Source: Macrostomum lignano
Taxonomy: Eukaryota
Direction of reading: 5' to 3'
Length of the DNA: 64,000 nucleotides
Assembly (NCBI GenBank): GCA_002269645.1
Contig: NIVC01000365.1
Coordinates: 372,001-436,000 of the forward strand
Of this stretch, positions 1-56,871 are shown in pieces. Each line of letters opens with the position of its first letter. The first letter of the stretch is position 1. The position numbers and the translations under genes are program-made. The notes beneath the pieces were generated by a model. The model ran no database searches. It had not been told where the DNA came from and saw only the letters and a list, made by a program, of their open reading frames with translations.

Positions 1-588
1 GGGGTCCAGCCAGCGGGCCGGCCACCCGGCGGTGAACTCGCCGACCAGCAGGCCGGCGGCCGAGTAGTGGGCGCGCACCTCCCGGATGGTGGCGCCCGGC
101 TCGGCGGCGGCGAGGCAGGACGGCATCAGGTAGCGGTGAAGGAGCCGCAGACGGTCCGGCAAGGCGTCAAAGCAGCTGAGCCGCTTCAGCAGGCGGCCAG
201 CGCGGACAAATTTCGAGTCGGAGCAGGCGACGTCGGAGGAGGCGGCGGCGGAGGTCGGCGAGCCGACGAGATTTGGCATGGACGCGCGGAGCAGCCTGCA
301 GGCGTAGGCGGACTCGGTGAATTCGCGGACAAGATGGTGGAAGCTGCGGCAGGTGCAGGCCAGTTGGCCGAGATCGTCGGCGTCCAGACAGCCGCTGGCG
401 AGGATGCGGAACAGCAGCTCCGGCGGCAGGTTGGCGAGGCCTCGGCTTGGCGGCTGCTCGCTTGGGCGGCTCCGCTTGGCCGGTGGCGCAGACGGGCTGC
501 GGCGGCGCTTGTGGCAGTCGACTGCCGAAGCTTCGGCAGCGGCTGCGGTTGCAGACATCTGGCATAGAGTCATCCAGCGGTGCAGCAT
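1..588 (-). CDS. FBXO47: FBXO47-like F-box protein, left copy; 5' part of exon 1 only (gene continues off the window start)
   Basis: Matches 6654-7241 at offset 6653. Carries the F-box motif LANLPPELLFRILASG...DLGQLACTCRSFHHLV. Confidence 0.8.
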   Translation of the reverse strand, partial: MLHRWMTLCQMSATAAAAEASAVDCHKRRRSPSAPPAKRSRPSEQPPSRGLANLPPELLFRILASGCLDADDLGQLACTCRSFHHLVREFTESAYACRLLRASMPNLVGSPTSAAASSDVACSDSKFVRAGRLLKRLSCFDALPDRLRLLHRYLMPSCLAAAEPGATIREVRAHYSAAGLLVGEFTAGWPARWLDP

Positions 589-729
589 GACGATTGGGAC
601 TGGCGAGCAGCGATGAATATTGATGGATGATGGGGGACGGAGACTGGAGGTATTGCGTTTGGTTAAATAAAGAAATTTTGAGTAGGTTCTCCTAAGACTG
701 GTTCAGAATCGGTTAAATCGGGGTAAACC

Positions 730-1550
730 GGAGTAGATTACTCTACTATTAGAGATTACTGTTACACCGAGGGAGATTACTCTTACACCGAGGGAGATTA
801 CTCTTACAGCGAGAGAAATTACTCTTACACCGAGGGAGATTACTCTTACACCGAGGGAGATTACTCTTACAGCGAGAGAAATTACTCTTACACCGAGGGA
901 GATTACTCTTACAGCGAGAGAAATTACTCTTACACCGAGGGAGATTACTCTTACACCGAGGGAGATTACTCTTACACCGAGGGAGATTACTCTTACACCG
1001 AGGGAGATTACTCTTACAGCGAGAGAAATCACTCTTACAGCGAGAGAGATTACTCTAAAACCGGGGAGATTACTCTAAAACCGGGGAGATTACTCTAAAA
1101 CCGAGGAGATTACTCTAAAACCGGGGAGATTACTCTAAAACCGAGTAGATTACTCTAAAACCGGGGGATTACTCTTAAACCGAGGGAGATTACTCTAAAA
1201 CCGAGGGAGATTACTCTAAAACCGGGGAGATTACTCTAAAACCGAGGAGATTACTCTTACACCGAGGGAGATTACTCTTACACCGAGGGAGATTACTCTT
1301 ACAGCGAGAGAAATCACTCTTACAGCGAGAGAGATTACTCTAAAACCGGGGAGATTACTCTAAAACCGGGGAGATTACTCTAAAACCGAGGAGATTACTC
1401 TAAAACCGGGGAGATTACTCTAAAACCGGGGAGATTACTCTAAAACTGGGGAGATTACTCTAAAACCGGGGGAGATTACTCTAAAACCGGGGAGATTACT
1501 CTAAAACCGGGGGAGATTACTCTAAAACCGGGGAGAATACTCTAAAACCG
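730..1550. repeat. 20-22 bp minisatellite (gagattactcttacaccgagg / gagattactctaaaaccggg) with two alternating sub-type blocks
   Basis: Directly visible tandem units between the MRPL43 3' end and the FBXO47 start. Confidence 0.95.
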
Positions 1551-1805
1551 TTGGAGTTAACTCTAGCAAAAGCAGCACGCAAACATTAACAGACTATTAA
1601 AGCAACAAGTTAAACGGCACATTTAACTGTGTATTTATAAATTTGCAATCGCTACTAACATGCAGACAATTCTAGGCAACACTGAGCTTTCCAGGATAAT
1701 GTCAAGAGGGGTCACTAGACTGGCACCAGATACTCCAGCGCTAGACTGACCAATCTGTAACCAAGACAAACATTTCGGTCACTGTGTGCGCCGGTCGAGA
1801 AGAGC

Positions 1806-2682
<877 letters not shown>

Positions 2683-3531
2683 AGCGCTGCTGGTGACTGC
2701 AAATTGAAAGCAATTATCAATGTTTTCGATACATATCGGGCTAAGAAAACACTTGTAATAAGGAGTGAATTCAAGACAGCTTTTTATTGTTTTCGATACA
2801 TATCGCTGTAATCGCGACAGTGAATTTTTTCGGCCTATTTTTCTAAGAAATCTCTGATGGCAAAAATCAGCAAAATAAAGGAAGCCGAACGATGCTCACA
2901 AGTTCCAAAAAACAATATCATAATCATAATTTGTTGCAAGCCTCAATCTATACAAAATCTGCATAGGGGGAATTGGGTTATGTGATCATGTAAAAATGTG
3001 CAATCTCTGCTGGAAGAGCACAAGTTTGGCGTATCAACAGTTTTAATGGCAACTAAAAATATTATTAATAAACGAAGTAGTGGACTTTATAGCAAGGAAA
3101 CAATAATATTCTGGAATATCGATTTGGTACAAGCGGATTTAGGCGCATATCTGAATACAAAACAGGTCACGACAGTCTGATCTGATATTGTGCTGGTAAA
3201 AAAGCTTTATAAACATGTAAATATTGAGTGCTGGCACGGATGGATAATGCTGCTTGTGTTGATTAGCCAATCTTAGCGCAGGTAACTGCTCTAGAAAAAT
3301 AAATAATTATAATAATAAACAGTTCTATTTATATTGAGAAACAGAGAAATTCCAATTTAAGCCCTGATTGCATGGTGCTGCACACTCTGGACACAAATAA
3401 AGTTGGCTACTTCATATCGCTTATACACTACTGATATATTGGAATTCAGCGTCTATATAGAGTTTTTTGCATAAATCAGCGAAAATAACTGAGCTTGCGT
3501 TGAGCACTGCGGAGGCAGCTCAGCGGCGTGT

Positions 3532-6500
3532 TCAATCGGCTGACGGGCCAAACTTTTCCGCTGGAGCTGCGCCTGCGGCATCACGGCGTTCCGAGACTGC
3601 GGCTATCTGCATTCCGGACTCTGACTCTGGGGCTGATGCAGCTGCCAGCTGATGAGGCTGCTGTTGCTGAGGCTGCTGTTGCTGAGGTTCAGCCTGATGA
3701 AAGTGCAGGGAACCGCCGGTCATCGAAGCCGGGGTAGCCGCGATGGAGCCGAAGTCGTCCATCGCAGCGACGGACACGGCGGGCGTCATCACGGAAGCGA
3801 AGGACTGCTGGCCGTAGGAGGCTGCCGGCTGTGGGTGGGGAGCGGATCAGACAGTTGTTAGGGGGCGGAATCGCACAGACTAGTAGGACATTACAGAGTC
3901 GAATCAATAAGTTATAAAGAGCGGAAGTAGGCGGCAATTGGGAAGTACAGAGCGGAAATGGGGAATTCTGGAGAAGTATACTGCGGTAGAGAGCGGTATA
4001 CTGTGGTAGAGAGCGGTATACTGCGGTAGAGAGCGGTATACTGCGGTAGAGAGCGGAATTACTGTGGTAGAGAGCGGTATACTGCGGTAGAGAGCGGAAT
4101 TACTGTGGTAGAGAGAGGAAGTACTGTGGTAGAGAGCGGTAGACTGTGGTAGAGAGCAGTAGACTGTGGTAGAGAGCAGTAGACTGTGGTAGAGAGCGGT
4201 AGACTGTGGTAAAGAGCGGTAGACTGTGGTAGAGAGCGGAAGTAGACTGTGGTAAAGAGCGGTAGACTGTGGTAGAGAGCGGTAGACTGTGGTAGAGAGC
4301 GGAAGTAGACTGTGGTAGAGAGCAGTAGACTGTGGTAAAGAGCGGTAGACTGTGGTAAAGAGCAGTAGACTGTGGTAGAGAGCGGTAGACTGTGGTAAAG
4401 AGCGGTAGACTGTGGTAGAGAGCGGTAGACTGTGGTAGAGAGCAGTAGACTGTGGTAGAGAGCAGTAGACTGTGGTAGAGAGCAGTAGACTGTGGTAGAG
4501 AGCAGTAGACTGTGGTAGAGAGCGGTAGACTGTGGTAAGAGAGCGGAAGTAGACTGCGGTAGAGAGCGGAATCAAGCAGCGATGGAGAGGCCGTATTAAG
4601 ATGCAAACCTGATTCGGCTGCTGGTGCGTCGCCACGGGCAGGTAAGCGCTTCCAGGTTGTTGCGGAAGCTGCTGCACATGCTGGTGCACTGGCGCGGAGC
4701 TGTAGTACACAGGCTGGGGAGGGAGCTGCTGCTGCTGGTACACTCCGCCCAGCTCAGTCAGAGTTTGGCCAGCACCGAGCTGCTGGACTAACGATGTTGT
4801 AGGAAAATTTCCCTGTTGATGAGGCACAGGAAACTGATGCTGATAAGGAGGCATAACAGGCATCAGTTGATAAGGCTGGCGATGAGACTGGAACTGCTGC
4901 TGCTGATGCAGCGGAGGCTGAGTGACAGCCATGAGGGTGACAGTGCCAGGCGGCAGCAGCTGCTGCAGCTGTGACTGAGGCAGCAACTGGCTGAGGGATT
5001 CCAATTTCACAGGTGAGATCTGCTGCTGCTGGGGCTGACACTGGACCAGCTGGGGCAGCATCTGGAACTGCTGCTGCTGAGGAGGAAGAGAAGCAGGTGC
5101 AGCCGCATTCCCCTCCTCCTGCTTGACGCTCTTCGCCTGGGCGTCGGGAGCGCCGCCACTGGGCTTTGATTTTCTCTTGGAAGTGGACGGCCTGGGCGCG
5201 GCCAGCTTCTTCGCGGACTCTTGTTGGTCTGAGGCCATCTTCTCCTGGAAGAGCCGATGCGACTCCGTCTGCTTGTAGGCCGCCAGCCGGGCCTCGTACT
5301 CGGCCGAGGCCTTGGCGTAGGCCTGCCGGTAGGCATCCTTGTCAGCCGACGGCAGGTCGCGCCACTGTCTGGCAACCACTTTGATCTGGTCGCGGCCTTT
5401 GAGCCGGTGCTCCGGCGTGTCCCGGATGTGCAGCCCGAGCTCGCCCATCTTCTCCTTCACGAACATGGTGTAGGCGGAGCGCGGGTTCACCGGCTCCTGC
5501 GGATCGCGGCGAGCCTGGCGGGACCGACGGCCGGTGCCAACCGGCCTGCGCGGCTTAGCCTGCGGAGTCTGACCGGACGCTTCATCGGCCATGTACAGGT
5601 CGGCCATGACGGTCCTGAAGCTGTCGCCGAAGCTGTCGATCAGGTAGGCGCGCTTAGCGGCGCTCGGCGCAGCGGCGATGGTGCTGCGGATCAGCCCGGC
5701 CACCAGGCCGAACGGCTGCTTGGCCTTGACGGTCACCAGACAGAGCGACGTCAGCAGCATCACCAGCTCGTTGCTGGCCGACTCGCTTTTCGACATTCGA
5801 CGCGCCATGCCGTTTAGCACCAGGCGGCTCACCTGGCAGCCGGCCATGAGCAGCACGCAGGCGGAGTTCTCGGACAGCCAGGCGGTGGGCAGCCTGCGCA
5901 GGGATGACAAACGGAATTGAGTCGTTAAAAAAACACAAGAGTTGCCCCAGAGTCGCAAGAGTCAACAGAGAGCTGTTTGCAATGACTCTTTAGCGATTCT
6001 TGGCATGGTAACGTTTCCAACGGGCTGCCCACTCCGCCGACTCCCCTGAGCAGGCACACAAGCGCGCGGATACGTACACTGTACTGTGCCCTGGGGGGTT
6101 GGCTTCGAAGGGCGTTAATTGCAGGAGCAGAGCCAAGCCGAGATTCCAATTTAGCCCCAAGTTAATGTGACTGCAATTGAAATCGAGCCTGGGCCGCGCT
6201 CTAGCGCCACAGACTGGCGCTCGCGCCTCACCTGGTCAGCTCTTCGAACAGGCGCGGAATTCGCGGCCGCAGCTTCTTGTCAGTGTAGAGGGCGCGCAGG
6301 GCGTCGCCAAGGCTGCCGAAGCAGGCGTCGATTTGGGCGGCGCTGGCTGCCGTGCTGCGGGACATGTCGCGCCACATCACCCGCGACTCGAACGTCGGCC
6401 CGAGGGTGACGAACAGCAGCCAGGCGGCCGGCCGGGACCGCCAGGCGGCCAACAGGCGGCAAAAGCGGCGCCAGCGCTGCCGCTCGGAGCAGACGGCCAG

Positions 6501-7241
6501 GAACAGGTGGCGGATGAAGAGGCGGACGCGGAAATCGTCGACTGCGGAGACGGGAGCGCCGCCAGACGAGACGGCGAGCTCGGCGACGGTCAGCAGGGCG
6601 GGTCTCCGCCGGGAGCTGCGCGGGTCGAACAGGCGAAGCAGCGCCAGTCCGGCGGGGTCCAGCCAGCGGGCCGGCCACCCGGCGGTGAACTCGCCGACCA
6701 GCAGGCCGGCGGCCGAGTAGTGGGCGCGCACCTCCCGGATGGTGGCGCCCGGCTCGGCGGCGGCGAGGCAGGACGGCATCAGGTAGCGGTGAAGGAGCCG
6801 CAGACGGTCCGGCAAGGCGTCAAAGCAGCTGAGCCGCTTCAGCAGGCGGCCAGCGCGGACAAATTTCGAGTCGGAGCAGGCGACGTCGGAGGAGGCGGCG
6901 GCGGAGGTCGGCGAGCCGACGAGATTTGGCATGGACGCGCGGAGCAGCCTGCAGGCGTAGGCGGACTCGGTGAATTCGCGGACAAGATGGTGGAAGCTGC
7001 GGCAGGTGCAGGCCAGTTGGCCGAGATCGTCGGCGTCCAGACAGCCGCTGGCGAGGATGCGGAACAGCAGCTCCGGCGGCAGGTTGGCGAGGCCTCGGCT
7101 TGGCGGCTGCTCGCTTGGGCGGCTCCGCTTGGCCGGTGGCGCAGACGGGCTGCGGCGGCGCTTGTGGCAGTCGACTGCCGAAGCTTCGGCAGCGGCTGCG
7201 GTTGCAGACATCTGGCATAGAGTCATCCAGCGGTGCAGCAT
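3532..7241 (-). CDS. FBXO47: Putative chimeric gene: FBXO47-like N-terminal part fused in frame to HMG-box plus Q-rich C-terminal part. Exons 7241(or 7211)-6232, 5893-4609, 3828-3532; about 853-863 aa
   Basis: Exon 1 has an F-box plus FBXO47-like blocks (GRLLKRLSC..DRLRLLHRYL, GEFTAGW, RVRLFIRHLFL, AWLLFVTLGP, VMWRDM, LGDALRALY). A phase-2 intron AG|GTGAG...gcgcag|G gives EELTR-LPTAWLSENSACVLLMAG (human FBXO47 recalled as DELSVVPREWLLENNARLLMLSG). Exon 2 reads without a stop across the junction (LYMA-DEASGQ) into the HMG box, then a phase-0 intron leads to a last exon ending in a stop at 3532. FBXO47 identity is from recalled homology, not a search. Confidence 0.72.
3945..4570. repeat. About 20-bp minisatellite (gtagactgtggtagagagcg) in the last intron of the chimeric gene
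   Basis: Directly visible; about 143 bp shorter than its duplicate at 10595-11362. Confidence 0.95.
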
Positions 7242-7382
7242 GACGATTGGGACTGGCGAGCAGCGATGAATATTGATGGATGATGGGGGACGGAGACTGG
7301 AGGTATTGCGTTTGGTTAAATAAAGAAATTTTGAGTAGGTTCTCCTAAGACTGGTTCAGAATCGGTTAAATCGGGGTAAACC

Positions 7383-8205
7383 GGAGTAGATTACTCTACT
7401 ATTAGAGATTACTGTTACACCGAGGGAGATTACTCTTACACCGAGGGAGATTACTCTTACAGCGAGAGAAATTACTCTTACACCGAGGGAGATTACTCTT
7501 ACACCGAGGGAGATTACTCTTACAGCGAGAGAAATTACTCTTACACCGAGGGAGATTACTCTTACAGCGAGAGAAATTACTCTTACACCGAGGGAGATTA
7601 CTCTTACACCGAGGGAGATTACTCTTACACCGAGGGAGATTACTCTTACACCGAGGGAGATTACTCTTACAGCGAGAGAAATCACTCTTACAGCGAGAGA
7701 GATTACTCTAAAACCGGGGAGATTACTCTAAAACCGGGGAGATTACTCTAAAACCGAGGAGATTACTCTAAAACCGGGGAGATTACTCTAAAACCGAGTA
7801 GATTACTCTAAAACCGGGGGGATTACTCTTAAACCGAGGGAGATTACTCTAAAACCGAGGGAGATTACTCTAAAACCGGGGAGATTACTCTAAAACCGAG
7901 GAGATTACTCTTACACCGAGGGAGATTACTCTTACACCGAGGGAGATTACTCTTACAGCGAGAGAAATCACTCTTACAGCGAGAGAGATTACTCTAAAAC
8001 CGGGGAGATTACTCTAAAACCGGGGAGATTACTCTAAAACCGAGGAGATTACTCTAAAACCGGGGAGATTACTCTAAAACCGGGGAGATTACTCTAAAAC
8101 TGGGGAGATTACTCTAAAACCGGGGGAGATTACTCTAAAACCGGGGAGATTACTCTAAAACCGGGGGAGATTACTCTAAAACCGGGGAGAATACTCTAAA
8201 ACCGT
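7383..8205. repeat. Duplicate of the 20-22 bp minisatellite at 730-1550
   Basis: Directly visible. Confidence 0.95.
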
Positions 8206-8459
8206 TGGAGTTAACTCTAGCAAAAGCAGCACGCAAACATTAACAGACTATTAAAGCAACAAGTTAAACGGCACATTTAACTGTGTATTTATAAATTTGC
8301 AATCGCTACTAACATGCAGACAATTCTAGGCAACACTGAGCTTTCCAGGATAATGTCAAGAGGGGTCACTAGACTGGCACCAGATACTCCAGCGCTAGAC
8401 TGACCAATCTGTAACCAAGACAAACATTTCGGTCACTGTGTGCGCCGGTCGAGAAGAGC

Positions 8460-9332
<873 letters not shown>

Positions 9333-10181
9333 AGCGCTGCTGGTGACTGCAAATTGAAAGCAATTATCAATGTTTTCGATACATATCGGGCTAAGAAAAC
9401 ACTTGTAATAAGGAGTGAATTCAAGACAGCTTTTTATTGTTTTCGATACATATCGCTGTAATCGCGACAGTGAATTTTTTCGGCCTATTTTTCTAAGAAA
9501 TCTCTGATGGCAAAAATCAGCAAAATAAAGGAAGCCGAACGATGCTCACAAGTTCCAAAAAACAATATCATAATCATAATTTGTTGCAAGCCTCAATCTA
9601 TACAAAATCTGCATAGGGGGAATTGGGTTATGTGATCATGTAAAAATGTGCAATCTCTGCTGGAAGAGCACAAGTTTGGCGTATCAACAGTTTTAATGGC
9701 AACTAAAAATATTATTAATAAACGAAGTAGTGGACTTTATAGCAAGGAAACAATAATATTCTGGAATATCGATTTGGTACAAGCGGATTTAGGCGCATAT
9801 CTGAATACAAAACAGGTCACGACAGTCTGATCTGATATTGTGCTGGTAAAAAAGCTTTATAAACATGTAAATATTGAGTGCTGGCACGGATGGATAATGC
9901 TGCTTGTGTTGATTAGCCAATCTTAGCGCAGGTAACTGCTCTAGAAAAATAAATAATTATAATAATAAACAGTTCTATTTATATTGAGAAACAGAGAAAT
10001 TCCAATTTAAGCCCTGATTGCATGGTGCTGCACACTCTGGACACAAATAAAGTTGGCTACTTCATATCGCTTATACACTACTGATATATTGGAATTCAGC
10101 GTCTATATAGAGTTTTTTGCATAAATCAGCGAAAATAACTGAGCTTGCGTTGAGCACTGCGGAGGCAGCTCAGCGGCGTGT

Positions 10182-12513
10182 TCAATCGGCTGACGGGCCA
10201 AACTTTTCCGCTGGAGCTGCGCCTGCGGCATCACGGCGTTCCGAGACTGCGGCTATCTGCATTCCGGACTCTGACTCTGGGGCTGATGCAGCTGCCAGCT
10301 GATGAGGCTGCTGTTGCTGAGGCTGCTGTTGCTGAGGTTCAGCCTGATGAAAGTGCAGGGAACCGCCGGTCATCGAAGCCGGGGTAGCCGCGATGGAGCC
10401 GAAGTCGTCCATCGCAGCGACGGACACGGCGGGCGTCATCACGGAAGCGAAGGACTGCTGGCCGTAGGAGGCTGCCGGCTGTGGGTGGGGAGCGGATCAG
10501 ACAGTTGTTAGGGGGCGGAATCGCACAGACTAGTAGGACATTACAGAGTCGAATCAATAAGTTATAAAGAGCGGAAGTAGGCGGCAATTGGGAAGTACAG
10601 AGCGGAAATGGGGAATTCTGGAGAAGTATACTGCGGTAGAGAGCGGTATACTGTGGTAGAGAGCGGTATACTGCGGTAGAGAGCGGTATACTGCGGTAGA
10701 GAGCGGTATACCGTGGTAGAGAGCGGTATACTGTGGTAGAGAGCGGAATTACTGTGGTAGAGAGCGGTATACTGCGGTAGAGAGCGGAATTACTGTGGTA
10801 GAGAGAGGAAGTACTGTGGTAGAGAGCGGTAGACTGTGGTAGAGAGCAGTAGACTGTGGTAGAGAGCAGTAGACTGTGGTAGAGAGCAGTAGACTGTGGT
10901 AGAGAGCGGTAGACTGTGGTAAAGAGCGGTAGACTGTGGTAGAGAGCGGAAGTAGACTGTGGTAAAGAGCGGTAGACTGTGGTAGAGAGCGGTAGACTGT
11001 GGTAGAGAGCGGAAGTAGACTGTGGTAGAGAGCAGTAGACTGTGGTAAAGAGCGGTAGACTGTGGTAGAGAGCGGTAGACTGTGGTAAAGAGCGGTAGAC
11101 TGTGGCAGAGAGCGGAAGTAGACTGTGGTAGAGAGCGGTAGACTGTGGTAAAGAGCAGTAGACTGTGGTAGAGAGCGGTAGACTGTGGTAAAGAGCGGTA
11201 GACTGTGGTAGAGAGCGGTAGACTGTGGTAGAGAGCAGTAGACTGTGGTAGAGAGCAGTAGACTGTGGTAGAGAGCAGTAGACTGTGGTAGAGAGCAGTA
11301 GACTGTGGTAGAGAGCGGTAGACTGTGGTAAGAGAGCGGAAGTAGACTGCGGTAGAGAGCGGAATCAAGCAGCGATGGAGAGGCCGTATTAAGATGCAAA
11401 CCTGATTCGGCTGCTGGTGCGTCGCCACGGGCAGGTAAGCGCTTCCAGGTTGTTGCGGAAGCTGCTGCACATGCTGGTGCACTGGCGCGGAGCTGTAGTA
11501 CACAGGCTGGGGAGGGAGCTGCTGCTGCTGGTACACTCCGCCCAGCTCAGTCAGAGTTTGGCCAGCACCGAGCTGCTGGACTAACGATGTTGTAGGAAAA
11601 TTTCCCTGTTGATGAGGCACAGGAAACTGATGCTGATAAGGAGGCATAACAGGCATCAGTTGATAAGGCTGGCGATGAGACTGGAACTGCTGCTGCTGAT
11701 GCAGCGGAGGCTGAGTGACAGCCATGAGGGTGACAGTGCCAGGCGGCAGCAGCTGCTGCAGCTGTGACTGAGGCAGCAACTGGCTGAGGGATTCCAATTT
11801 CACAGGTGAGATCTGCTGCTGCTGGGGCTGACACTGGACCAGCTGGGGCAGCATCTGGAACTGCTGCTGCTGAGGAGGAAGAGAAGCAGGTGCAGCCGCA
11901 TTCCCCTCCTCCTGCTTGACGCTCTTCGCCTGGGCGTCGGGAGCGCCGCCACTGGGCTTTGATTTTCTCTTGGAAGTGGACGGCCTGGGCGCGGCCAGCT
12001 TCTTCGCGGACTCTTGTTGGTCTGAGGCCATCTTCTCCTGGAAGAGCCGATGCGACTCCGTCTGCTTGTAGGCCGCCAGCCGGGCCTCGTACTCGGCCGA
12101 GGCCTTGGCGTAGGCCTGCCGGTAGGCATCCTTGTCAGCCGACGGCAGGTCGCGCCACTGTCTGGCAACCACTTTGATCTGGTCGCGGCCTTTGAGCCGG
12201 TGCTCCGGCGTGTCCCGGATGTGCAGCCCGAGCTCGCCCATCTTCTCCTTCACGAACATGGTGTAGGCGGAGCGCGGGTTCACCGGCTCCTGCGGATCGC
12301 GGCGAGCCTGGCGGGACCGACGGCCGGTGCCAACCGGCCTGCGCGGCTTAGCCTGCGGAGTCTGACCGGACGCTTCATCTTTGAGTCCATCATCGGCGGC
12401 GGCAGCGGTGGCAGCTTCAGAGGACTCCGCAGGCTGCTTAGCGCCTCCGATGAGGTCCTCAATGATGCTCGAGAGCGACACGGTGATTGGTGGGAGGGAC
12501 GCGGCGGCCCGCA
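10182..12513 (-). CDS. Native HMG-box protein (HMG20/TOX-like single box, Q/P-rich tail). Exons 12513-11402 and 10478-10182; 5' exon and start unresolved
   Basis: RRDPQEPVNPRSAYTMFVKEK...IKVVARQWRDLPSADKDAYRQAYAKASAEYEARLAAYKQTESHRLF is a canonical HMG box. Donor CAG|GTTTGC and acceptor cacag|CCG are in phase. There is no in-frame ATG upstream of the box within this exon. Confidence 0.82.
10595..11362. repeat. About 20-bp intronic minisatellite, longer duplicate of 3945-4570
   Basis: Directly visible. Confidence 0.95.
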
Positions 12514-12647
12514 CTAGGCATGCATTTTTTAGAAAACAATGCAAGTATGAAGTTGAATTTGCAGTGAGCGCTACTGACAGTAGACCCAATGTATTTTAAC
12601 GTTTTTTTCTAGCGAAAATACTCAATAGAAATTTTCGTGATTTTGCT

Positions 12648-14022
12648 GGAGATTCTCTGGACTAGAGGGCGATTCTCTGCACTAGAGGGCGATTCTCTGC
12701 ACTAGAGGGCGATTCTCTGCACTAGAGGTGATTCTCTGCACTAGAGGGCGATTCTCTGCACTAGAGACGATTCTCTGGACTAAGGGCAATTCTCTGCACT
12801 AGAGGGCGATTCTCTGCACTAGAGGGCGATTCTCTGGACTAGAGGGCGATTCTCTGGACTAAGGGCGATTCTCTGCACTACAGGGCGATTCTCTGCACTA
12901 GAGGGAGATTCTCTGCACTAGAGGGCGATTCTCTGGACTAGAGGTGATTCTCTGCACTAGAGGGCGATTCTCTGCACTAGAGACGATTCTCTGCACCAGA
13001 GGGTGATTCTCTGGACTAAGGGTGATTCTCTGGACTAGAGGTGATTCTCTGCACTAGAGGTGATTCTCTGCACTAGAGGGCGATTCTCTGGACTAGAGGC
13101 GATTCTCTGCACTAGAGGCGATTCTCTGCACTAGAGGTGATTCTCTGCACTAGAGGTGATTCTCTGCACTAGAGGGCGATTCTCTGGACTAGAGGCGATT
13201 CTCTGCACTAGAGGCGATTCTCTGCACTAGAGGTGATTCTCTGCACTAGAGGTGATTCTCTGCACTAGAGGTGATTCTCTGCACTAGAGACGATTCTCTG
13301 CACTAGAGACGATTCTCTGGACTAGAGGTGATTCTCTGCACTAGAGGTGATTCTCTGCACTAGAGGGCGATTCTCTGTACTAGAGGGTGATTCTCTGCAC
13401 TAGAGGGCGATTCTCTGCACTAGAGGTGATTCTCTGCACTAGAGGGCGATTCTCTGCACTAGAGGTGATTCTCTGCACTAGAGGGCGATTCTCTGCACTA
13501 GAGGGCGATTCTCTGCACTAGAGGGCGATTCTCTGCACTAGAGGGCGATTCTCTGCACTAGAGGTGATTCTCTGCACTAGAGGGCGATTCTCTGGACTAA
13601 GGGCGATTCTCTGCACTAGAGGGCGATTCTCTGCACTAGAGGGCGATTCTCTGGACTAGAGGGCGATTCTCTGGACTAAGGGCGATTCTCTGCACTACAG
13701 GGCGATTCTCTGCACTAGAGGGCGATTCTCTGGACTAAGGGCGATTCTCTGCACTACAGGGCGATTCTCTGCACTAGAGGGCGATTCTCTGGACTAGAGG
13801 GCGATTCTCTGGACTAAGGGCGATTCTCTGCACTACAGGGCGATTCTCTGCACTAGAGGGCGATTCTCTGGACTAAGGGCGATTCTCTGCACTACAGGGC
13901 GATTCTCTGCACTAGAGGGCGATTCTCTGCACTAGAGACGATTCTCTGCACCAGAGGGTGATTCTCTGGACTAAGGGTGATTCTCTGGACTCAGGGTGAT
14001 TCTCTGGACTCAGGGTGATTCT
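12648..14022. repeat. 21-22 bp minisatellite (gattctctgcactagagggc), probably filling the first intron of the HMG gene
   Basis: Directly visible. On the minus strand it starts immediately after a GTGAGT donor-like site near 14029. Confidence 0.93.
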
Positions 14023-14329
14023 CACTCACACCCGCACCTGAGGCATGATCGAAAGAGTTAAGCAGCAGCCAGAAGTCAGGTATCTCGGTGCTAGCAAATG
14101 AAATAAGATCAACGGCACGCCAAGTTGTAATTCTATGCATACTTTGATCCCTTGAACATTTTTTATTCAATTTTTTATTATTTGCACAAAAACACTTGTA
14201 GAAAAAAACACTGAGAGGAAAGCGAAAGATCTCATCGCTGCTTTGGTATTTTACACATACAGAGGGATCCGAGATACAGGCTGAGATTGGGGTTCTGCAG
14301 TACAGACTTGAAGGGCGGAGAATACAGAT

Positions 14330-14957
14330 GCTAAGGATGGGATTACAGACATTAAAGACTGGGACTACAGACTAAGGGCTGGGATTACAGAAGTTGAGAA
14401 TTAGGACTGGACCACAAGAGATTAAGGACAGGGACTACAAGAGATTAAGGACAGGGACTACAAGAGATTAAGGACTGGGACTACAAGAGATTGAGGACTG
14501 GGACTACAGGAGATTAAGGACTGGGATCGCAGAGATTAAGGACTGGGATTGCAGAGATTGGACTGGGATTGCAGAGATTAAGGACTGGGATTGCAGAGAT
14601 TAAGGACTGGGATTGCAGAGATTGGACTGGGATTGCAGAGATTAAGGACTGGGATTGCAGAGATTGGACTGGGATTGCAGAGATTAAGGACTGGGATTGC
14701 AGAGATTGGACTGGGATTGCAGAGATTAAGGACTGGGATTGCAGAGATTAAGGACTGGGATTGCAGAGATTAAGGACTGGGATTGCAGAGATTAAGGACA
14801 GGGACTACAGGAGATAAAGGACTGGGACTACAGGAGATAAAGGACTGGGACTACAGGAGATAAAGGACTGGGACTACAGGAGATAAAGGACTGGGACTAC
14901 AGGAGATTAAGGACTGGGATTGCAGAGATTGGACTGGGATTGCAGAGATTAAGGACT
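14330..14957. repeat. 17/22-bp minisatellite (gggattgcagagattaaggact)
   Basis: Directly visible. Confidence 0.93.
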
Positions 14958-15697
14958 GGTATTAATTACAGACACAGAGCCGGAGAAGGGGAAGACAGTG
15001 GCAGAACGGAGTTGGGAGCAAAGCACGCAGAGCGGCAGGCATCAATGTGAGCACAGAACGGTCAGGTAGGCAAATGAAACGCGTTAATCAAATTTCGGCA
15101 GGCCTGATGGACAGTTAAAAAAGGGGGTAACAAAGAAAAGCAGAAATCAGTAATCAAGCGCGTAAAACCGGATTGATTTAAAGCGATAAAGCAGAAGAAT
15201 AAGTGCACACAGAAACCAAGGCTTTGAGTTGATTAGGTAAGCCTTAATTGCTATGCCTACAGTCACTGTTGATAAAGTTTAATAAATAAAGCGGTGCACA
15301 ATCAGTTACACGCACGGGGTCCAACGCAAGCTGCTGTGGTAAAAATAAAGAGCGAACAGATTAGTAAAAAGCACAAAAAGAGCATCGTGTCCTTTGACAG
15401 CATCAGAACAGACATTTTGTAAGTATAAACAAAACGATGAGCAAAAAACAGTAAAGGATATTAGCATTGTATACAGCGGGCCTGGGAACCGCAATATCGA
15501 ATTCAAAGTGAGGAAGGAAATTTACAAGAATTGTCATAGTTAAGAAAAGCAGACAGAACTACAATAACAGTTCTTTGATCAATGCTGCTTATGAAGTAAA
15601 AGTTATGAACATATAGAAAATGTTTTTTGGCTATTGACGAGAAGACAACAGCTAAACTCGAAGCGAATTTGCAGCGGATCGAACCGATTGGCGGGCC

Positions 15698-18600
15698 TCA
15701 GCTCCTGGACAGCCTGTAGATGTGCCTCTGCGCGCCGTGGACACTCGAGGACACCTCGAATACGTACGCGATGCACAACAGCGGCTCCCCGGTGTCAGTG
15801 TTCGTCACCACCTGCGGCGGGGTGCGGACTGGCTTCGATTTCCATGGCACTAATGGCGCTCAGCCAGATTGACATAATATTAGGACCTGGGAGGCTGACC
15901 GCCCAGCAACTGAGGATCTGGGAGGCTGGCGGTGGCACAGCAACTAAGAATCTGGGAGGGTGCTGGCCCAGCAACTGAGGATCTGAGAGGCTGGCCCAGC
16001 AACTGAGGATCTGGGAGGCTGGACCAGCAACTGAGGATATGGGAGGCTGGCCCAGCAACTGAGGATCTGAGAGGCTGGCCCAGCAACCGAGGATCTGGGA
16101 GGCTGGACCAGCAACTGAGGATATGGGAGGCTGGCCCAGCAACTGAGGATCTGAGAGGCTTGCCCAGCAACTGAGGATCTGAGTGGCTGACCCAGCAACT
16201 GAGGATCTGAGAGGCTGGCCCAGCAACTGAGCATCTGGGAGGCTGGCCCAGCAACTGAGGATATGGGAGGCTGGCCCAGCAACTGAGGATCTGAGAGGCT
16301 TGCCCAGCAACTGAGGATCTGGGACGCTTGTGTTGGCCCAGCAACTGAGGATCTGGGAGGCTGGCCCAGCAACTGAGGATCTGGGAGGCTGGCCCAGCAA
16401 CTGAGGATCTGGGACGCTTGTGTTGGCCCAGCAACTGAGGATCTGGGACGCTTGTGTTGGCCCAGCAACTGAGGATCTGGGACGCTTGTGTTGGCCCAGC
16501 AACTGAGGATCTGGGACGCTTGTGTTGGCCCAGCAACTGAGGATCTGGGACGCTTGTGTTGGCCCAGCAACTGAGGATCTGGGAGGCTGGCCCAGCAACT
16601 GAGGATCTGGGAGGCTGGCCCAGCAACTGAGGATCTGGGAGGCTGGCCCAGCAACTGAGGATCTGGGAGGCTGGCTTAGCAACTGAGGATCTGGGAGGCT
16701 GGCCCAGCAACTGAGGATCTGGGACGCTGGTGTTGGCCCAGCAACTGAGGATCTGGGACGCTTGTGTTGGCCCAGCAACTGAGGATCTGGGACGCTTGTG
16801 TTGGCCCAGCAACTGAGGATCTGGGACGCTTGTGTTGGCCCAGCAACTGAGGATCTGGGAGGCTGGACCAGCAACTGAGGATATGGGAGGCTGGCCCAGC
16901 AACTGAGGATCTGAGAGGCTGGCCCAGCAACTGAGGATCTGAGAGGCTGGCCCAGCAACTGAGCATCTGGGAGGCTGGCCCAGCAACTGAGGATCAGGGA
17001 GGCTGGCCCAGCAACTGAGGATCTGGGACGCTGGTGTTGGCCCAGCAACTGAGGATCTGGGACGCTTGTGTTGGCCCAGCAACTGAGGATCTGGGAGGCT
17101 GGCCCAGCAACTGAGGATCTGGGAGGCTGGCCCAGCAACTGAGGATCAGGGAGGCTGGCCCAGCAACTGAGGATCTGGGACGCTGGTGTTGGCCCAGCAA
17201 CTGAGGATCTGGGACGCTTGTGTTGGCCCAGCAACTGAGGATCTGGGACGCTTGTGTTGGCCCAGCAACTGAGGATCTGGGAGGCTGGCCCAGCAACTGA
17301 GGATCTGGGAGGCTGGCCCAGCAACTGAGGATCTGGGAGGCTGGCCCAGCAACTGAGGATCTGGGACGCTTGTGTTGGCCCAGCAACTGAGGATCTGGGA
17401 CGCTTGTGTTGGCCCAGCAACTGAGGATCTGGGAGGCTGGCCCAGCAACTGAGGATCTGGGAGGCTGGCCCAGCAACTGAGGATATGGGAGGCTGGCCCA
17501 GCAACTGAGGATCTGGGAGGCTGGCCGCCCAGCAACTGAGGATCTGGGAGGCTGGCCGCCCAGCAACTGAGGATCTAGAAGACTGGCCGCCCAGCAACTG
17601 AGGATCTGGGGGTAGCCAAGCAACTGAAGATTTGGGAGGGTGCTGACCCAGCAACTAAGGATGGCAGGATTGGCAGCGAAAATTCAAAATCTGTGGTATC
17701 TTGGCTTATTAAACAGCGCATTGAAACAACACATTTACTAAAGCTGCGACTCTCACCTGCATAATAGTGAAGTTCTCGAGCACGGAGTTCATCATAAACT
17801 TCTCTGGCAGCTGGCGCAGCTTGGAGATGAAGTTGATCATGTACTCGCACATCGGAATTCGCTCATTCTGATAAATGTATTTGCCGTTCTCTGAGTGCGG
17901 AGAAATGTGCTTCTCAACCTTCTCAACCACTTGCTTGCCGAATGAGCACACTTTGGTTGAGAAGGACAAGTTCATGCTCTCCTGGCTTTCGTACCTGCAG
18001 TTCATCAGTTTGGAATTGGGAAGTACGAGAACTGGTCAGGCACTGTGGTATCAATTCAATAAATTCCCGTGTGCCCCCGACATGAATTTCCCTGGAAATA
18101 ATTCCCCACCAGCCGCTTACACGGTGGTGTGGCCATAGAACACAAATTCCCCATGGCAATACTGTAATTCCCCACCAGCCGCTTACACGGTGGTGTGGCC
18201 ATAGAACACAAATTCCCCATGGCAATACTGTAATTCCCCACCAGCCGCTTACACGGTGGTGTGGCCATAGAACACAAATTCCCCATGGCAATACTGTAAT
18301 TCCCCACCAGCCGCTTACACGGTGGTGTGGCCATAGAACACAAATTCCCCATGGCAATACTGTAATTCCCTGCCAGCCGCTTACACGGTGGTGTGGCCAT
18401 AGAACATGTTTCCCGGATGGTCCTCAGGCAGGGTGGTGTTGATATCCGCCCAGATTTTGACCAGGAAGGCCGCCGACTCCGGCCCCTTGTCAAAGAAGTC
18501 GTTGAGGCCTCGCTTTGCTGGAAATTTGTCAGCAATCTGCGACTGGTCGACGCTTTCCATGCGCGCGATGGCGGACTCGGGCAGCTGGCCCATCGGGCAG

Positions 18601-19561
18601 TTGATGTGAGCAAAGATGTGCCGCTGCTGCTGGTAGGCGGAAGACTCGACTCCGGTCACCTCAACGAAGGCTGTCAGCTCGCGCAGCCGGAGCTTCGGCC
18701 CCACAATCGCCTGACAGCTGGCGCCGACGCCGGTGCCAGTTGGAGACGAGACGGCGGCGGCGGCAGCGGCAGCTACGGCGGCTGCAGCGGCGGCGGCGGC
18801 GTCGGCTGAGGCCAGGCCAGGCCACTGGGAGGCGCCACTGCCGGGGCTGCCAGGGCCGTGGCCCGCTCCCGCCGGCCAGAATGCGGAGCCGCCGGCGGCA
18901 GCGGAGGCTGACTGCCTGGGCCCGGTGCTCTCCTGGCCGCGGGCCATGCCGGCGCTGACGATCTGGGCTGAGCTGAGCTGGCTGAGGCTGTGCATGGCCT
19001 TTTCCTTGGTGGCCGGATCCTTGATGTTGGTCTGAACCTCTTTGGTTTTGCGCCTAGCCAGCACCTGGATGTGGCTGGACACCTGCTTTCTGGTCCTGGT
19101 CTTGCCAGTCCGCAGCTTGATGTAGCGCGCGATCAGCTCGTTGCGGCCTAGAGGGGGTGGCGGGTTGGAGGGCATGAGGCACCCTGCGGCTTCATGACTA
19201 TTGGGACTTGACTGTCTCGTCATTCTTACAGTATTCAGTCGTCCTTGTCCCGCTCGCGGTTTTAATCAAGGGCCCCAGCTTAACTGACTTCCACGGCCAA
19301 GGCAAAGCAGTCAGTAAGCAGGTAGGCGCGATGCCAGACAGACTCACCGTACATCTTGCCCTCGTCAGACAATATAATCTTCCGCCTGCCGCAGGGCGGG
19401 TAGAGAGCCAAGGCCTCCTGGAAGCTCTGCTCGATGTCCGGACTCCAGACGCCCTCGGCATCGTTCGGATCCTCCTCGGCCTCTTCGTCCTCTTCGTTCA
19501 TGTCGTCGTCATCCACGACGCTGCTGGGCACAACGGTGCTCCATGCTTTGTTTGGCTCCAT
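15698..19561 (-). CDS. TEAD: TEAD/scalloped transcription factor, 442 aa. Exons 19561-19348, 19147-18385, 17994-17757, 15811-15698
   Basis: TEA domain [39 protein letters not shown]|[36 protein letters not shown]-binding domain [16 protein letters not shown]...[31 protein letters not shown]|[30 protein letters not shown]. All splice phases are consistent (214+763+238+114=1329 nt). Confidence 0.97.
15893..17665. repeat. 28/35-bp minisatellite (ctggcccagcaactgaggatctgggagg and ...gacgcttgtgtt variant) filling TEAD intron 3
   Basis: Directly visible; source of the spurious long ORFs at 15795-17654. Confidence 0.96.
18092..18405. repeat. 66-bp tandem repeat (about 4.7 units) spanning the TEAD exon 2/intron 2 boundary
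   Basis: gcttacacggtggtgtggccatagaac recurs at 18115, 18181, 18247, 18313 and 18379. Confidence 0.95.
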
Positions 19562-23280: not shown

Positions 23281-24023
23281 TAGCTTTTGGCAGCCTATTG
23301 GGGCTTACGCGCATTTAATTTAATCCAAGATAGGTTTGCCAATGTTATAGAGCTTTTTGTCTATGGTAGCAAGGCTGCCACAGCGGCACTTAATTTGGTC
23401 CAACAAGCATCAATTTGGTCCAAATGCTTGTGAGCCAATGGCAAGCTCTTGCCTTCTTGCAACTGCCTAAGGGAATGTCAGCGTCTGTACCAGCAATTTT
23501 CAGTCGCTTTTCCAGAGCTCTGCTGATAGTCCAAATCTGATAACCAACTGGAACTTTTCCTTCAACTGCTGCTGCATTTTCTGCAACGTCAACAAAGGGT
23601 TCGTCTCAATTGCATTAAGTAGCAGTTGGACCTGAGTCTCTAGCAACTTGCCGTGGCGATTGCCACCTTACCACAGGCGACCTATGCCAGAAGTGGTTTT
23701 AACACGCAGATGGATGCTGTAAACCATTTTTCTTCTATATTCAGCAGCCTTGCAATGTCCTTTGGGTGTTCACCTCTGTTGAGTGCTTTGATGACAAGTC
23801 AGTGGCATACGTTCGACAACCTAGCATGGTTCACAATTCTGGGGCTGATCTAGCTCCTCTGCAACAGTTGCAAATGAAGCTATGGACCAAACTGATGCTT
23901 GTTGGACCAAATTAAGTGCCGCTGTGGCAGTCTTGCTACCATAGACAAAGGCTCCGGTACATTGGCAAACCTATCTTGGATTAAATTAAATGCGTGTCAG
24001 CCGAAATAGGCTGCCAAAAGCTA
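23281..24023 (-). mobile_element. Second non-autonomous Tc1/IS630-like element with about 140-bp TIRs and TA target duplication; retains a decayed N-terminal HTH transposase fragment
   Basis: TA|tagcttttggcagcctatt ... aataggctgccaaaagcta|TA. The minus strand reads VIKALNRGEHPKDIARLLNI...GGNRHGKLLETQVQLLLNAIETNPLLTLQKMQQQLKEKF...TISRAL with stops and frameshifts. Confidence 0.8.
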
Positions 24024-24283
24024 TACTCTTGCGTATATGTACAATGCTTTTGGCAAAATTGTCTCACAACGACTGGCGAGGCAATTGTACCCATTATTGC
24101 TGATTTCTGACCACATGTACACACAGCACATGCTCACATAGCACATGCTCACATAGCACATGCTCACACAGCACATGCTCACACAGAGTGTACAGCAGGC
24201 TTGATTATAATTTTCAAGTATATATATACACTGTATCTTAGGGCTGGCACAAGAGTCAAAATGCACTTGCAGCTAAGCTACGC

Positions 24284-27200
24284 TGCTCTCTGCCAGAAAC
24301 ACAAAACAGCTCTCATAGTTTTCAGAGCTATTCCTAAGAGACAAGCAATAGAATCTCTAAGAAATATAGAATCCCATTGAAATTGAGTCAGGTTGCTACA
24401 ATGCCTAGATCATGGATCAACTTGGGATTTTTATGAAGTTATCATGCTTTAAATTATGAAGCATTAGTTTTTTCTTAAAACATAGGTCTTATATTTGAGT
24501 TAAATATCCTAATGAAATTTGGTAATATACAATGTATATTTAATATTAATAATAATACTATTTGCTTTGAAAAAGTTATAAAACTTTTCTATCTAATGGT
24601 CTTACTTAATATTAGCTTTTAAAAAACTATAAAAGGATTATCATAGTAGTTTATATAACAAACAAGATACTAGCCTGCTAAATAGAACAAACTGAATATA
24701 GTCTAAACTGTACACATTTTTTCTGCATATTTGTTGAGTTGGTAAAATAAGCAACAATGCTTCTTATTGGTTATATGAGAATGCCATTTAATTCTCAAAC
24801 AAAATTTTGGGATTTAATAAACCCAAAATATTTTTGCTATATATCTTATAGAGAATTTTCTACTATTTGGTCATAACCTTTAGAGGATTAAATTGTACTT
24901 AGATACATATAGCATTCTTGCTTCTAATAAAAAAGTGTAAACTCTTACAAAGGATATTCAATATTCTAAATTATATTAGGGTTTAAGTAAATATTAGGCC
25001 AAACACAAAATATATTTTTAAAAAAAATTTTGCTTATAAATTTAAAATATAAGATAGATACCTACTAACAAAACATTTTTTGCATATGGATCTTAATAAA
25101 AAATATTTTTAAAGATTATAATTTGGCTATTTTTACTTTATAAATTAGTTGGTCTACTATACAAGGATTTTTATAGATTCTTAAAAATAAACCATAGCTA
25201 GGCATAAGATCTTATATACTAAATCTTAAAAAGCCTATGGGCTATAGATGCACAATACTATAAATTGAACATAAAATATTTAAGTTTTAACTAAAATTTT
25301 AAAGCATAAAAAATATTTTTTAATATAAACTATAAGCCTAATGGGGCTATAAAGATAAAGTTAATCAATAATCTAATTAATTATTACTGATTAAAAAAGA
25401 CTAAAAAGCCCTTTGTCTATATAACTTAAGCAATTTTAGGTAGCCTAGGCCTAAGCATTTTAAGTAGGCCTACTTGAATTTTATCAAGTAAAATAGCTTA
25501 GGTCTTTTGAAGATTGCAGAATAAGAACTAGTGATAGATCCAAACATTTGGATTTGGAATCTGAAAAAATGTCAAACTTTTTTAGAAATATGAATGTTTT
25601 AGATTAGGAAATTTTATTTATCAAATATTTCCCAATGTGCTTCCAAATAGGAAAAAAAGTCAAGAAACCTCAAGTTGCAAAAACATTTTTGGTAGTCATT
25701 GTTTAAGTGTAATCATTAGTTGGATTTTTACAAAATGCAAATACATGAATTTATGGTAAAAGTTTTCAAATAGCAAAGATGTAATAGTAGTTAGTATTAA
25801 TAATTAGAATTAGCTAGATTAGTTATATAAGAATAAAGTTTGAATCAAACTTATTTATTCTTTACTAAGTTTTAATTCTTGCAATTTTGCTTGAATTTCA
25901 CTTGAAGAGTAGATTAGTTGCTTACTTAGATTACTAATTAGATGATGAAGGATTTTGTTATTTAAAAGTGTTAAAGTTATTACTGCCATTTACCTTTTAC
26001 TTTTCAGTTACTTTTGGAAACACATTTGGATATTTGGATTTAATTAGGAAATTTTTGCACTTTTAGATTCAGTTTTAGAAACTTGCAAAAATCTATATCT
26101 AGTCTATCACTAATTTTGTTAAACTGGCATGCTTTTTAAATTAAAAAAATCAACTTGATTTCATTTAATTTACACGGCTACACTTTGCATTGTATATACT
26201 AAGACTTAATTAGATAAAGACAATATCTATCAACAATACTATATGATATAGAGTTTTAATCAAAATTATAAAATGTGAGAAATCTATTTTAATATTGCTT
26301 CTTAAGTCATGTGCTTATATTTGATTTTTCAAAAAATTAAGACAAAAAAATTAAATAAAATGAGACAAAATGAATAATATCTTGTTATTTTAAAGTAAAA
26401 AGATATTGCAAAGCAGTTATTAATAAATAAAGGCTTTTTTATGTCTAACTCTAATTTATAATTTAAGCACCAAAAAACAAACTGTGGCATTGAAATACTA
26501 AGTACTAAAAAGCATAGGCACTAAAAAGCATAGATACTATATGTCTATAGCAATAATATTTAAAAGTCTTGTTTTACTTAGACTTAGATAAGGTTGCAGT
26601 GACCTTGTACTAGGGACTAACCTTTTTTAACCTTCTAATATACTAAAAATAAAATTCTTGCTTGTATGTGTGCAATTGATTATTTCTCAAAAGGCTTAAC
26701 CAATTTTCTTCCTTTTTGCCAAAATTTTATGCTATATTCAATATAAACATTTCATTCTAGAAAATTTTGCCTAAATAGTATTTTTTCTGTATTTTAGGCA
26801 TCTTAAATTCTTACATATATGCTTTTTGAATTCTAGAATGTTCTACAAGAGACTAGGCCTATAAATATAGGCAGTTGTTATTTATTAGACAAATAGCAAT
26901 ATGGTTATTTGTCCAGTTACTGAATAATAGCCACGTTTCCTTTATCCAGTTAATATCAGACAAATAGGCATTTTAATAATCTATTTTACAGAAACTACAA
27001 AGGTGAATATTCTTGGATTTCAAAGATTTCTTACTCCTATCTTGATTATTATGTTGTTGTACTAGTGTATGTTTTAAGTTATAAAATTATGGCGAATTGC
27101 ATACACACCATAGTTTTATCATGCTGGGTACACACCTGAAAAAAATTGAATAATTACAAATGCACGCTAAAAAATGTAGTGTACACCCATTCTCAAAAAA

Positions 27201-55020: not shown

Positions 55021-55324
55021 CGAAGGAATCGGCAATCGATGTAAAGCTACTGAGGTCCGATTGATCGGTAGCGCAAGCATTAGCGTGAGCTATACTTGTA
55101 TTGACGAGTGCCAGCTATATCAGGTTAACAGAAAAACTGTAGCAGTTATTGGTTTTCTCGATAATTTGCTAAATAATTTTCCGCTGAAAATCGATGGCCT
55201 TAGGAAGGAAATTGGAAATGAAATTAGGAACAGGAAATTGCCTTACTTTGTTTTTAACAAAATGGACGACTATTATAATTAATTTTGGACTTCATTTTAT
55301 TTTATTCCCACGGTCCTCACGGTC

Positions 55325-56512: not shown

Positions 56513-56871
56513 TGCCACAAAGTCACAAGAAACAGCAACAATGTGTTTTTCTTTTTATTTCCATCACTCATCAGATGGTACTCATAGTAATTAGCGCAGG
56601 CTGACAAAGTTGCGCTTGTTCTTCGGCTGGTTTTTGAGCAGCTGATCAATCGGTATCGTCTGCGGTAGCTGCATGAGCCGCTCGGTTGGCTGGTCCTCGA
56701 ACTTGGCGCAGCTGCCAGAGATGAACCGCCGCATGCAGACCTGCCGCTGCACCAGAGCAAAGCAGGGCACCCGCAGCGTCACCCACAAGTAGCGGTACAT
56801 ACTGTCTGCTTGGGAATCCTTTGACGCCTTCAGGTACCGCAGGAAACTGTCGGTGAGGGAGAGCGCGATAT

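Follow-up and report, generated by a model that had tools for sequence, protein, structure and literature searches.

A probable recent tandem duplication in Macrostomum lignano joins an FBXO47-like gene in frame to an HMG-box gene

Does a junction that joins coding exons of two different genes in the Macrostomum lignano genome reflect a genuine fusion, and, if it does, has a new gene been born? We addressed this question in a window of 64,000 nucleotides (NIVC01000365.1:372001-436000, assembly Mlig_3_7, GCA_002269645.1), where, on the minus strand, the first 437 codons of an FBXO47-like F-box gene run into an HMG-box gene. We think it likely that this chimera comes from a real and very recent tandem duplication of ~6.65 kb on one of three homeologs of a TEAD–HMG–mL43–FBXO47 gene cluster, and that the event left it behind as a neutral or slightly deleterious by-product. 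Positions are those of the window, and negative coordinates lie to its left, where sequence was taken from the flanking locus L002 (NIVC01000365.1, 360802-382600, reversed), which adds 11.2 kb left of the window and is 100% identical to window 1-10600; window -1060 corresponds to L002 11661. Two homeologous loci were compared, L001 on NIVC01000592.1 and L003 on NIVC01002366.1, with the L003 comparisons covering two DNA alignment blocks only.

A chimeric open reading frame between two tandem units

Self-alignment revealed a head-to-tail repeat of ~6.65 kb, in which window 1-5586 recurs at 6654-12379 as two collinear units in the same orientation (Table 1). One breakpoint lies in exon 2 of the FBXO47-like gene, after codon 437 of 482, and the other in the upstream HMG-box gene, within its first annotated coding exon, at 12379/12380, where the native gene reads ...ADDGLK/DEASGQ, just as the initial annotation of this DNA had read it. 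The second unit thus carries, on the minus strand, the 3' 95% of the native HMG gene, a second copy of mL43, a mitochondrial ribosomal protein L43-like gene, and the 5' 91% of FBXO47. The resulting minus-strand order is TEAD-like, HMG, mL43, chimera (7241-3532), mL43 and FBXO47, with the parental HMG and FBXO47 genes intact on both sides of the chimera. The intact 3' end of FBXO47, which the initial annotation had suggested looking for left of the window, was found there, with its stop codon at window -1198; the whole gene spans L002 10013-11799. The window contains no N, and the junction lies inside a gap-free part of the 649-kb record.

The chimera is an uninterrupted open reading frame (ORF) of 863 aa in three exons on the minus strand, with GT/AG sites and compatible phases at both introns. 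A single stop-free ORF at 3904..5958 (minus strand) in the mechanical ORF list spans the junction, and both splice junctions are used by GenBank models of the parental proteins, FEELTR/LPTAW in FBXO47 (P0005) and QQPNQ/PAASYG in HMG (P0008). The predicted product is FBXO47(1-437)-Met-Ala-HMG(Asp…end), in which the HMG-derived part makes up 424 residues. This bears out the initial annotation in its central claim of an in-frame fusion, made by a tandem duplication with its breakpoints in two co-oriented genes, and in its three-exon model of about 850 aa with canonical, in-phase splice sites. As read from the assembled DNA, this is a newborn in-frame chimeric ORF.

We further considered the sequence upstream of the chimera. 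The second unit keeps everything upstream of FBXO47 up to and past the native HMG gene, so that the chimera sits in the exact native upstream context of FBXO47, in agreement with the earlier claim that the fusion lies under the FBXO47 upstream region. With this full context and the 3' end of HMG, the chimera is probably transcribed like FBXO47. In M. lignano, around 7% of transcriptional units are polycistronic precursors that trans-splicing resolves (PMC5730564), and older ML2/UniProt gene models read through HMG–mL43–FBXO47 as single proteins, which together make it plausible that the three genes are co-transcribed as a polycistronic unit.

Junction scar and age of the duplication

The junction had been placed at 5586/5587. 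This holds for the HMG-side boundary only; FBXO47 homology stops at 5593 (…CTGTAC), and between the two edges lies a 6-nt filler, ATGGCC, so the join is not blunt. Likewise, of the peptide FRTVMADLYMA that had been assigned to FBXO47 exon 2, homology extends to Tyr437, while the final MA comes from neither parent. The native FBXO47 sequence across the break point is …CTGTACGAGAGC…; the 31-mer around the chimera junction is …GGCCGACCTGTACATGGCCGATGAAGCGTCC…, and its native counterparts are …CTGTACGAGAGCGAAGG… and …GGACTCAAAGATGAAGCG…. The filler is identical to FBXO47 sequence lying 15 nt upstream; adding the C before it and the GA after it gives a 9-nt direct repeat (CATGGCCGA). Breakpoint microhomology, which the initial annotation had singled out as worth measuring, amounts to 1 and 2 nt flanking the filler. 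In the three-way alignment of chimera and parents, no repeats or extended homology were found at the breakpoints. Homologous recombination between repeats was excluded, since the breakpoints lie in unique coding sequence and share at most 2 nt.

Polymerase-theta end joining has templated insertions and tandem duplications among its described hallmarks (PMC7368036). The scar at 5587 resembles such events in the kilobase scale of the duplication, the lack of long homology, the 1-2 nt of microhomology and the short insertion copied from beside the break, and differs in that theta dependence is here read from the scar itself. Microhomology-mediated end joining, most likely in its polymerase-theta form, would have linked the ends. 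The 3' terminus ...CTGTAC would have re-primed 15 nt upstream and copied ATGGCCGA, and a GA match would then have let the extended end pair with that of HMG. That the frame survived this 6-nt templated insertion, given where the two breaks lie, would be chance, with a prior of about 1 in 3.

The two units differ by 3 substitutions and 5 indels in a global MAFFT alignment; counting substitutions only, their identity is 99.95%. Three indels (83, 20 and 40 nt) fall within the 20-nt minisatellite of the HMG intron, whose copy 2 counterpart (10626-11362) is 143 nt longer than the copy 1 array; a 4-nt indel lies in a CTGT microsatellite and a 1-nt indel in an intergenic minisatellite, 4 of the 5 being counted as mini- or microsatellite indels. 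Between chimera and native gene, the HMG-derived coding sequence shows 0 differences over 1275 nt, and the 1.7 kb of intergenic and mL43 sequence is identical except for the 4-nt microsatellite indel. By comparison, NIVC01002366.1 differs from the duplicated 1.7 kb by ~9 substitutions and a different microsatellite, and NIVC01000592.1 is 1.5% diverged from the FBXO47 part. On these alignments, the two copies are closer to one another than either is to a homeolog.

On both homeologous contigs the cluster is unduplicated, in the order TEAD – HMG – mL43 – FBXO47, and neither contig contains the junction 27-mer, which leaves the duplication on one of the three homeologs. As the copies are mutually closest and the homeologs unduplicated, the duplication would be younger than the separation of the homeologs, and the label 'newborn' is justified. 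With so few changes between copies, the open reading frame says nothing about selection. The DV1 genome consists of three paralogous subgenomes, and ~70% of Mlig_3_7 lies in 3-copy blocks with a single-nucleotide polymorphism divergence of 1.9-2.4% (PMC10733133). At this cluster the three subgenomes are fully covered by contigs 365, 2366 and 592, so the extra copy is not a subgenome switch; this source of the duplication was excluded, all three homeologs being on separate contigs and the two copies mutually closest.

Table 1. Features of the duplicated cluster, in window coordinates, with the sequences at the break (a slash marks the break point)
Feature	Position	Strand	Details
Copy 1 of the unit	-1060 to 5586		6647 nt, of which 1061 nt left of the window; self-alignment and L002
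Copy 2 of the unit	5593..12379		6787 nt; self-alignment and unit-to-unit MAFFT alignment
Native FBXO47-like gene, 5' part	1..588	-	ATG at 588; stop at L002 11799 (window -1198)
mL43 copy 1	1806..2682 (L002 7922-8795)	-	GenBank-annotated, 172 aa
Chimera exon 3	3532..3828	-	last HMG exon including stop codon; coding sequence identical to native copy
Chimera exon 2	4609..5893	-	ORF model, Pfam, three-way alignment
Exon 2, HMG exon from Asp	4609-5586	-	HMG box coded at 5272-5499, then Q-rich region
Exon 2, filler ATGGCC	5587..5592	-	6 nt; codons Met438-Ala439 of chimera; in neither parent (three-way alignment)
Exon 2, FBXO47 exon 2 to Tyr437	5593-5893	-	
Chimera exon 1	6232..7241	-	FBXO47-derived, ATG at 7241; exon also used in GenBank FBXO47 models
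F-box-like domain in chimera exon 1	6978-7091	-	Pfam, aa 51-88
mL43 copy 2	8460..9332	-	intact; coding sequence identical to copy 1; no GenBank annotation
Native HMG-box gene as annotated	10182..12508	-	exons 11402-12508 and 10182-10478; 5'-partial
Native FBXO47 at break			…GTCATGGCCGACCTGTAC/GAGAGC…
Native HMG at break			…GGACTCAAA/GATGAAGCG…
Chimera at break			…CTGTAC-ATGGCC-GATGAAGCG…
Minisatellite	752-1565		
Minisatellite, HMG intron of chimera	3976..4569		20-nt unit; Tandem Repeats Finder
Minisatellite	7405-8219		
Minisatellite	10626-11362		
Minisatellite	12651-14023		
Minisatellite	14417-14963		
Minisatellite	15882-17662		

Domain content of the predicted product

The N-terminal part of the chimera contains an F-box-like domain scoring 33 bits in Pfam against a cut-off of 24.3, while ARM_FBXO47 (PF24467), scored directly, reaches 25.5-26.5 bits (26.5 in the chimera), just under its cut-off of 27; both matches fall within the first 439 aa of the chimera. 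An exhaustive HMMER search with the native protein returned 42 relatives, the best outside Macrostomum at E = 5e-31, and ARM_FBXO47 was passed by all 10 of the nearest relatives tested (49-138 bits). Most of the HMMER alignments extend to around residue 470 of 486. By these relatives, the N-terminal half of the chimera belongs to the FBXO47 family, as had been proposed. FBXO47 and PROM-1 are meiotic-prophase F-box proteins, with SKP1 binding and a meiotic-prophase expression and function known for mouse FBXO47 and worm PROM-1 (PMC8931362, PMC7145685, PMC8849337).

The initial annotation further held that the fusion keeps the F-box and almost all of the FBXO47 helical domain and loses only the C-terminal tail. 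The F-box is indeed kept, and the rest is too generous. The chimera lacks 45 aa, with the break at DLY/E in the family alignment, and the lost positions include the invariant A459 and Q460 and the near-invariant E442, D452 and F463. These belong to a conserved C-terminal helix (…DLYE.DEL.E.R.EDFS.ILRAQAEF…) that the native gene has and the chimera does not. In an AlphaFold2 model of native FBXO47 (mean predicted local distance difference test score, pLDDT, 71.7; predicted template modelling score 0.66), the lost residues fall in a predicted terminal helix at 446-481, with a pLDDT of ~86-91 over 450-470. Alignment and model together identify the missing 45 aa as the family's best-conserved C-terminal helix and not a dispensable tail, and with this helix removed the FBXO47 moiety of the chimera may be crippled.

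The C-terminal part gained in the fusion contains a complete HMG box followed by the Q-rich tail, again in line with the initial annotation. HMG_box_2 scores 28.2 bits in Pfam against a cut-off of 22.4, the HMG_box match spans profile positions 4-69 of 69, and chimera and native gene have an identical box. Its best solved relatives are TFAM (E = 1e-7), TOX and HMGB1, which assigns it, by similarity, to the non-sequence-specific type (HMGB/TFAM/TOX-like). From what is known of the two families, it is reasonable to expect that the chimera would bind SKP1 through its F-box and DNA through its HMG box.

At the 5' end of the native HMG gene (window 12380-12589, minus), the reading frame has no ATG within the first annotated exon, and all three GenBank HMG models are 5'-partial. 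The start codon has to be supplied by an exon further upstream or by trans-splicing. An ATG at 12521 was discarded as the native start, being out of frame. A near-repeat of the native HMG exon start (ATGCCTCAGGTGCGGG) is present at ~14035-14050, beyond a 1.4-kb minisatellite.

Status of the chimera and its genomic setting

We then weighed the preferred account, a real duplication with a by-product chimera, against two others. Several observations weigh against it. Polymerase-theta involvement, though most likely, is deduced from the scar alone, and the probability that a composition-matched 6-mer occurs by chance on one strand or the other, at most 30 nt from one of the breakpoints, is ~0.09. 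The unit is a 4-copy block in an assembly with wrongly represented paralogs (PMC10733133), and a false duplication would show the same near-identity of copies. Mlig_3_7 is the only assembly holding the junction, and GenBank annotates no gene at the chimera. Word-indexed searches, one querying the entire chimera and the other 266 aa centred on the junction and lacking the Q-rich tail, did not find a junction-spanning protein and returned only M. lignano proteins of the parental type; this absence is weak evidence, as the sensitivity was imperfect and the 266-aa query missed even the native FBXO47 cluster. The ML2/UniProt models P0002, P0003, P0004 and P0007 were discarded as junction evidence, being native-order HMG–mL43–FBXO47 read-throughs with frameshifts.

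A further difficulty is that the three differences cluster beside the junction. All three inter-copy substitutions (window 5778, 5683 and 5656) lie within 190 nt of it, for which arithmetic from the unit alignment gives a chance of ~2e-5 under uniformity. One of them is non-synonymous, with Ala in the chimera and Thr in the native copy. When polarized against the homeologs, one substitution is derived in the chimera and one in the native copy; at the third, the chimera has the L001 state and the native copy the L003 state. Error-prone or template-switching repair synthesis, later gene conversion, or mosaic polishing, with only the short reads anchored at the junction mapping uniquely, are all possible causes.

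If Canu had been led to assemble the same 6.65 kb twice, by a long read that was chimeric or misplaced or by over-expansion of a haplovariant, the fusion ORF would be fictitious. The 99.95% identity of the copies would be expected in that case, the junction appears in no independent sequence, either in the protein searches or in the homeologous contigs, and the annotation pipeline gave no chimera model. Mlig_3_7 was built with Canu 1.4 from ~130x PacBio data, polished by Pilon with Illumina DNA and RNA-seq, and scaffolded by SSPACE (PMC5730564); most of its 4-copy blocks are at 3-fold read coverage and probably erroneous, and 93% of read pairs multi-map (PMC10733133). We nevertheless regard such an artefact as unlikely. 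The junction falls in unique coding sequence, outside the abundant minisatellites nearby, and its templated 6-nt insertion with microhomology has the look of a biological repair scar, unlike the blunt join of a chimeric read. A random chimeric read would also seldom link points that lie 6.7 kb from each other and keep the same orientation. The 3 substitutions and the differing minisatellite lengths (143, 4 and 1 nt) point to two distinct sequences, and all three subgenomes are already present on separate contigs.

A real duplication could also have produced a functional new gene, whose product would be the germline-expressed and DNA-tethered adaptor of the SKP1–CUL1–F-box (SCF) complex suggested by the initial annotation, or a dominant-negative protein that binds SKP1 and not the substrates of FBXO47, kept by selection. 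The open frame with intact F-box, HMG box and splice sites, the preserved native upstream context of FBXO47 and the meiotic-prophase role of FBXO47/PROM-1 (PMC8931362, PMC7145685, PMC8849337) would suit such a role, and new expression patterns are known to arise in chimeras formed by tandem duplication (PMC5460883). We give this reading very little credence. In so young a duplication, with 3 substitutions and none in the HMG part, an open frame carries no weight, and the frame would have been kept in about 1 in 3 cases in any event. The most conserved FBXO47 C-terminal helix is deleted, the duplication is present on only one of the three homeologs, and no junction-spanning protein or transcript turned up in the public collections that were searched. 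It would be equally surprising if the chimera were transcribed in the gonad from the FBXO47 context and its stable protein brought SKP1/CUL1 to HMG-bound chromatin or poisoned SCF-FBXO47; it would then be a segregating F-box::HMG gene of functional consequence, at most a few thousand generations old and sheltered from purifying selection in a neopolyploid by three intact homeologs. Under the by-product account, the chimera would be too young to have been tested by selection, would not be an established new gene, and would have three intact homeologs each of FBXO47 and HMG to buffer it.

The duplication has also left its mark on the public annotation. The GenBank model BOX15_Mlig019616g1 (PAA84632.1, 477 aa, 5'-partial) covers both copies, at window 3532-12508 on the minus strand, and has four QQQQP repeats, where each genomic copy encodes two. 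It is reproduced exactly only by joining 12508-11402, 10478..~10303-10310 (exon 3 of copy 2) and ~3682-3689..3532 (exon 3 of copy 1), a join that spans a 6.6-kb 'intron' lacking GT/AG. This HMG model is an annotation artefact of the duplication, and its stitching across both copies hides the second mL43 and the chimera from the annotation, where both are missing. No mention of Mlig019616, Mlig018915 or FBXO47 was found in the assembly paper supplements or the M. lignano literature.

Chimeric genes from tandem duplications are documented in Drosophila, for example in a population survey of D. yakuba (PMC5460883). As in those cases, the breakpoints lie in two co-oriented neighbours, the 5' part of one gene meets the 3' part of the other at the junction, and the intact parents flank it; the Drosophila events are young and often polymorphic. 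The M. lignano chimera differs in that its host is a neopolyploid with three homeologous copies of the locus, and in being supported by one assembly. The topology itself is therefore already known from other tandem-duplication chimeras, and what is new here is the combination of FBXO47 with HMG, for which we found no description in the literature.

Tandem duplications also create the fusion oncogenes KIAA1549::BRAF and FGFR3::TACC3, which are somatic, recurrent and selected for kinase activation. They too place a promoter and 5' exons in frame with the 3' exons of the upstream neighbour and leave the parents intact, whereas the M. lignano case is apparently germline, was seen once and has its breakpoints in exons rather than introns. 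At the protein level, KDM2A and KDM2B (FBXL11 and FBXL10) are ancient, conserved F-box proteins with a DNA-binding CXXC zinc finger of their own. Like the chimera, they combine a SKP1-binding F-box with a DNA- or chromatin-binding domain in one polypeptide and provide a precedent for a chromatin-tethered SCF adaptor; unlike them, the chimera has an HMG box in place of CXXC, ARM in place of leucine-rich repeats, and is a newborn fusion. Within the FBXO47/PROM-1 family, each of the closest relatives is a Pfam ARM_FBXO47 protein, 430-470 aa in length. The N-terminal 437 aa of the chimera resemble them in having an F-box followed by putative FBXO47-type helical (ARM) repeats, and the chimera departs from them in lacking the conserved C-terminal helix and carrying 424 foreign residues, the M. 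lignano protein itself being just below the Pfam cut-off.

If read support confirms the junction, the locus would show the birth of a gene by exon shuffling with unusual clarity, with the repair scar still legible, both parents adjoining and the ancestral state kept twice on the homeologs. Transgenesis and RNA interference in M. lignano make the expression of the chimera and its meiotic effect directly testable. Young tandem duplicates like this one may contribute to the '4-copy' blocks of Mlig_3_7. A single chimeric ORF of this kind is to be expected in a repeat-rich, recently polyploid genome and would not surprise a specialist.

Among the neighbouring genes, mL43, named from UniRef and Pfam L51_S25_CI-B8, is wholly duplicated. 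A TEAD-like gene with a TEA/ATTS and a YAP-binding domain lies directly upstream of the native HMG gene (18381-19223 minus, and ~15795-17654) and is also found on both homeologous contigs. Minisatellites with units of 20-28 nt, in up to 70 copies, fill the introns and spacers of the cluster, and it is chiefly in the length of these arrays that the duplicate copies differ, as do the homeologs.

Further along the window, at 55194-56594, a repeat with a 9/12/21-nt period (CTGCCTCCTCCGCTGCCTCTA) is traversed on both strands by long ORFs (up to 466 aa). These have no Pfam match; the stretch could be a coding exon of repetitive sequence or just a minisatellite that happens to stay open. Window 24001-28000 is AT-rich, with 27% G+C as opposed to 45-59% elsewhere in the window.

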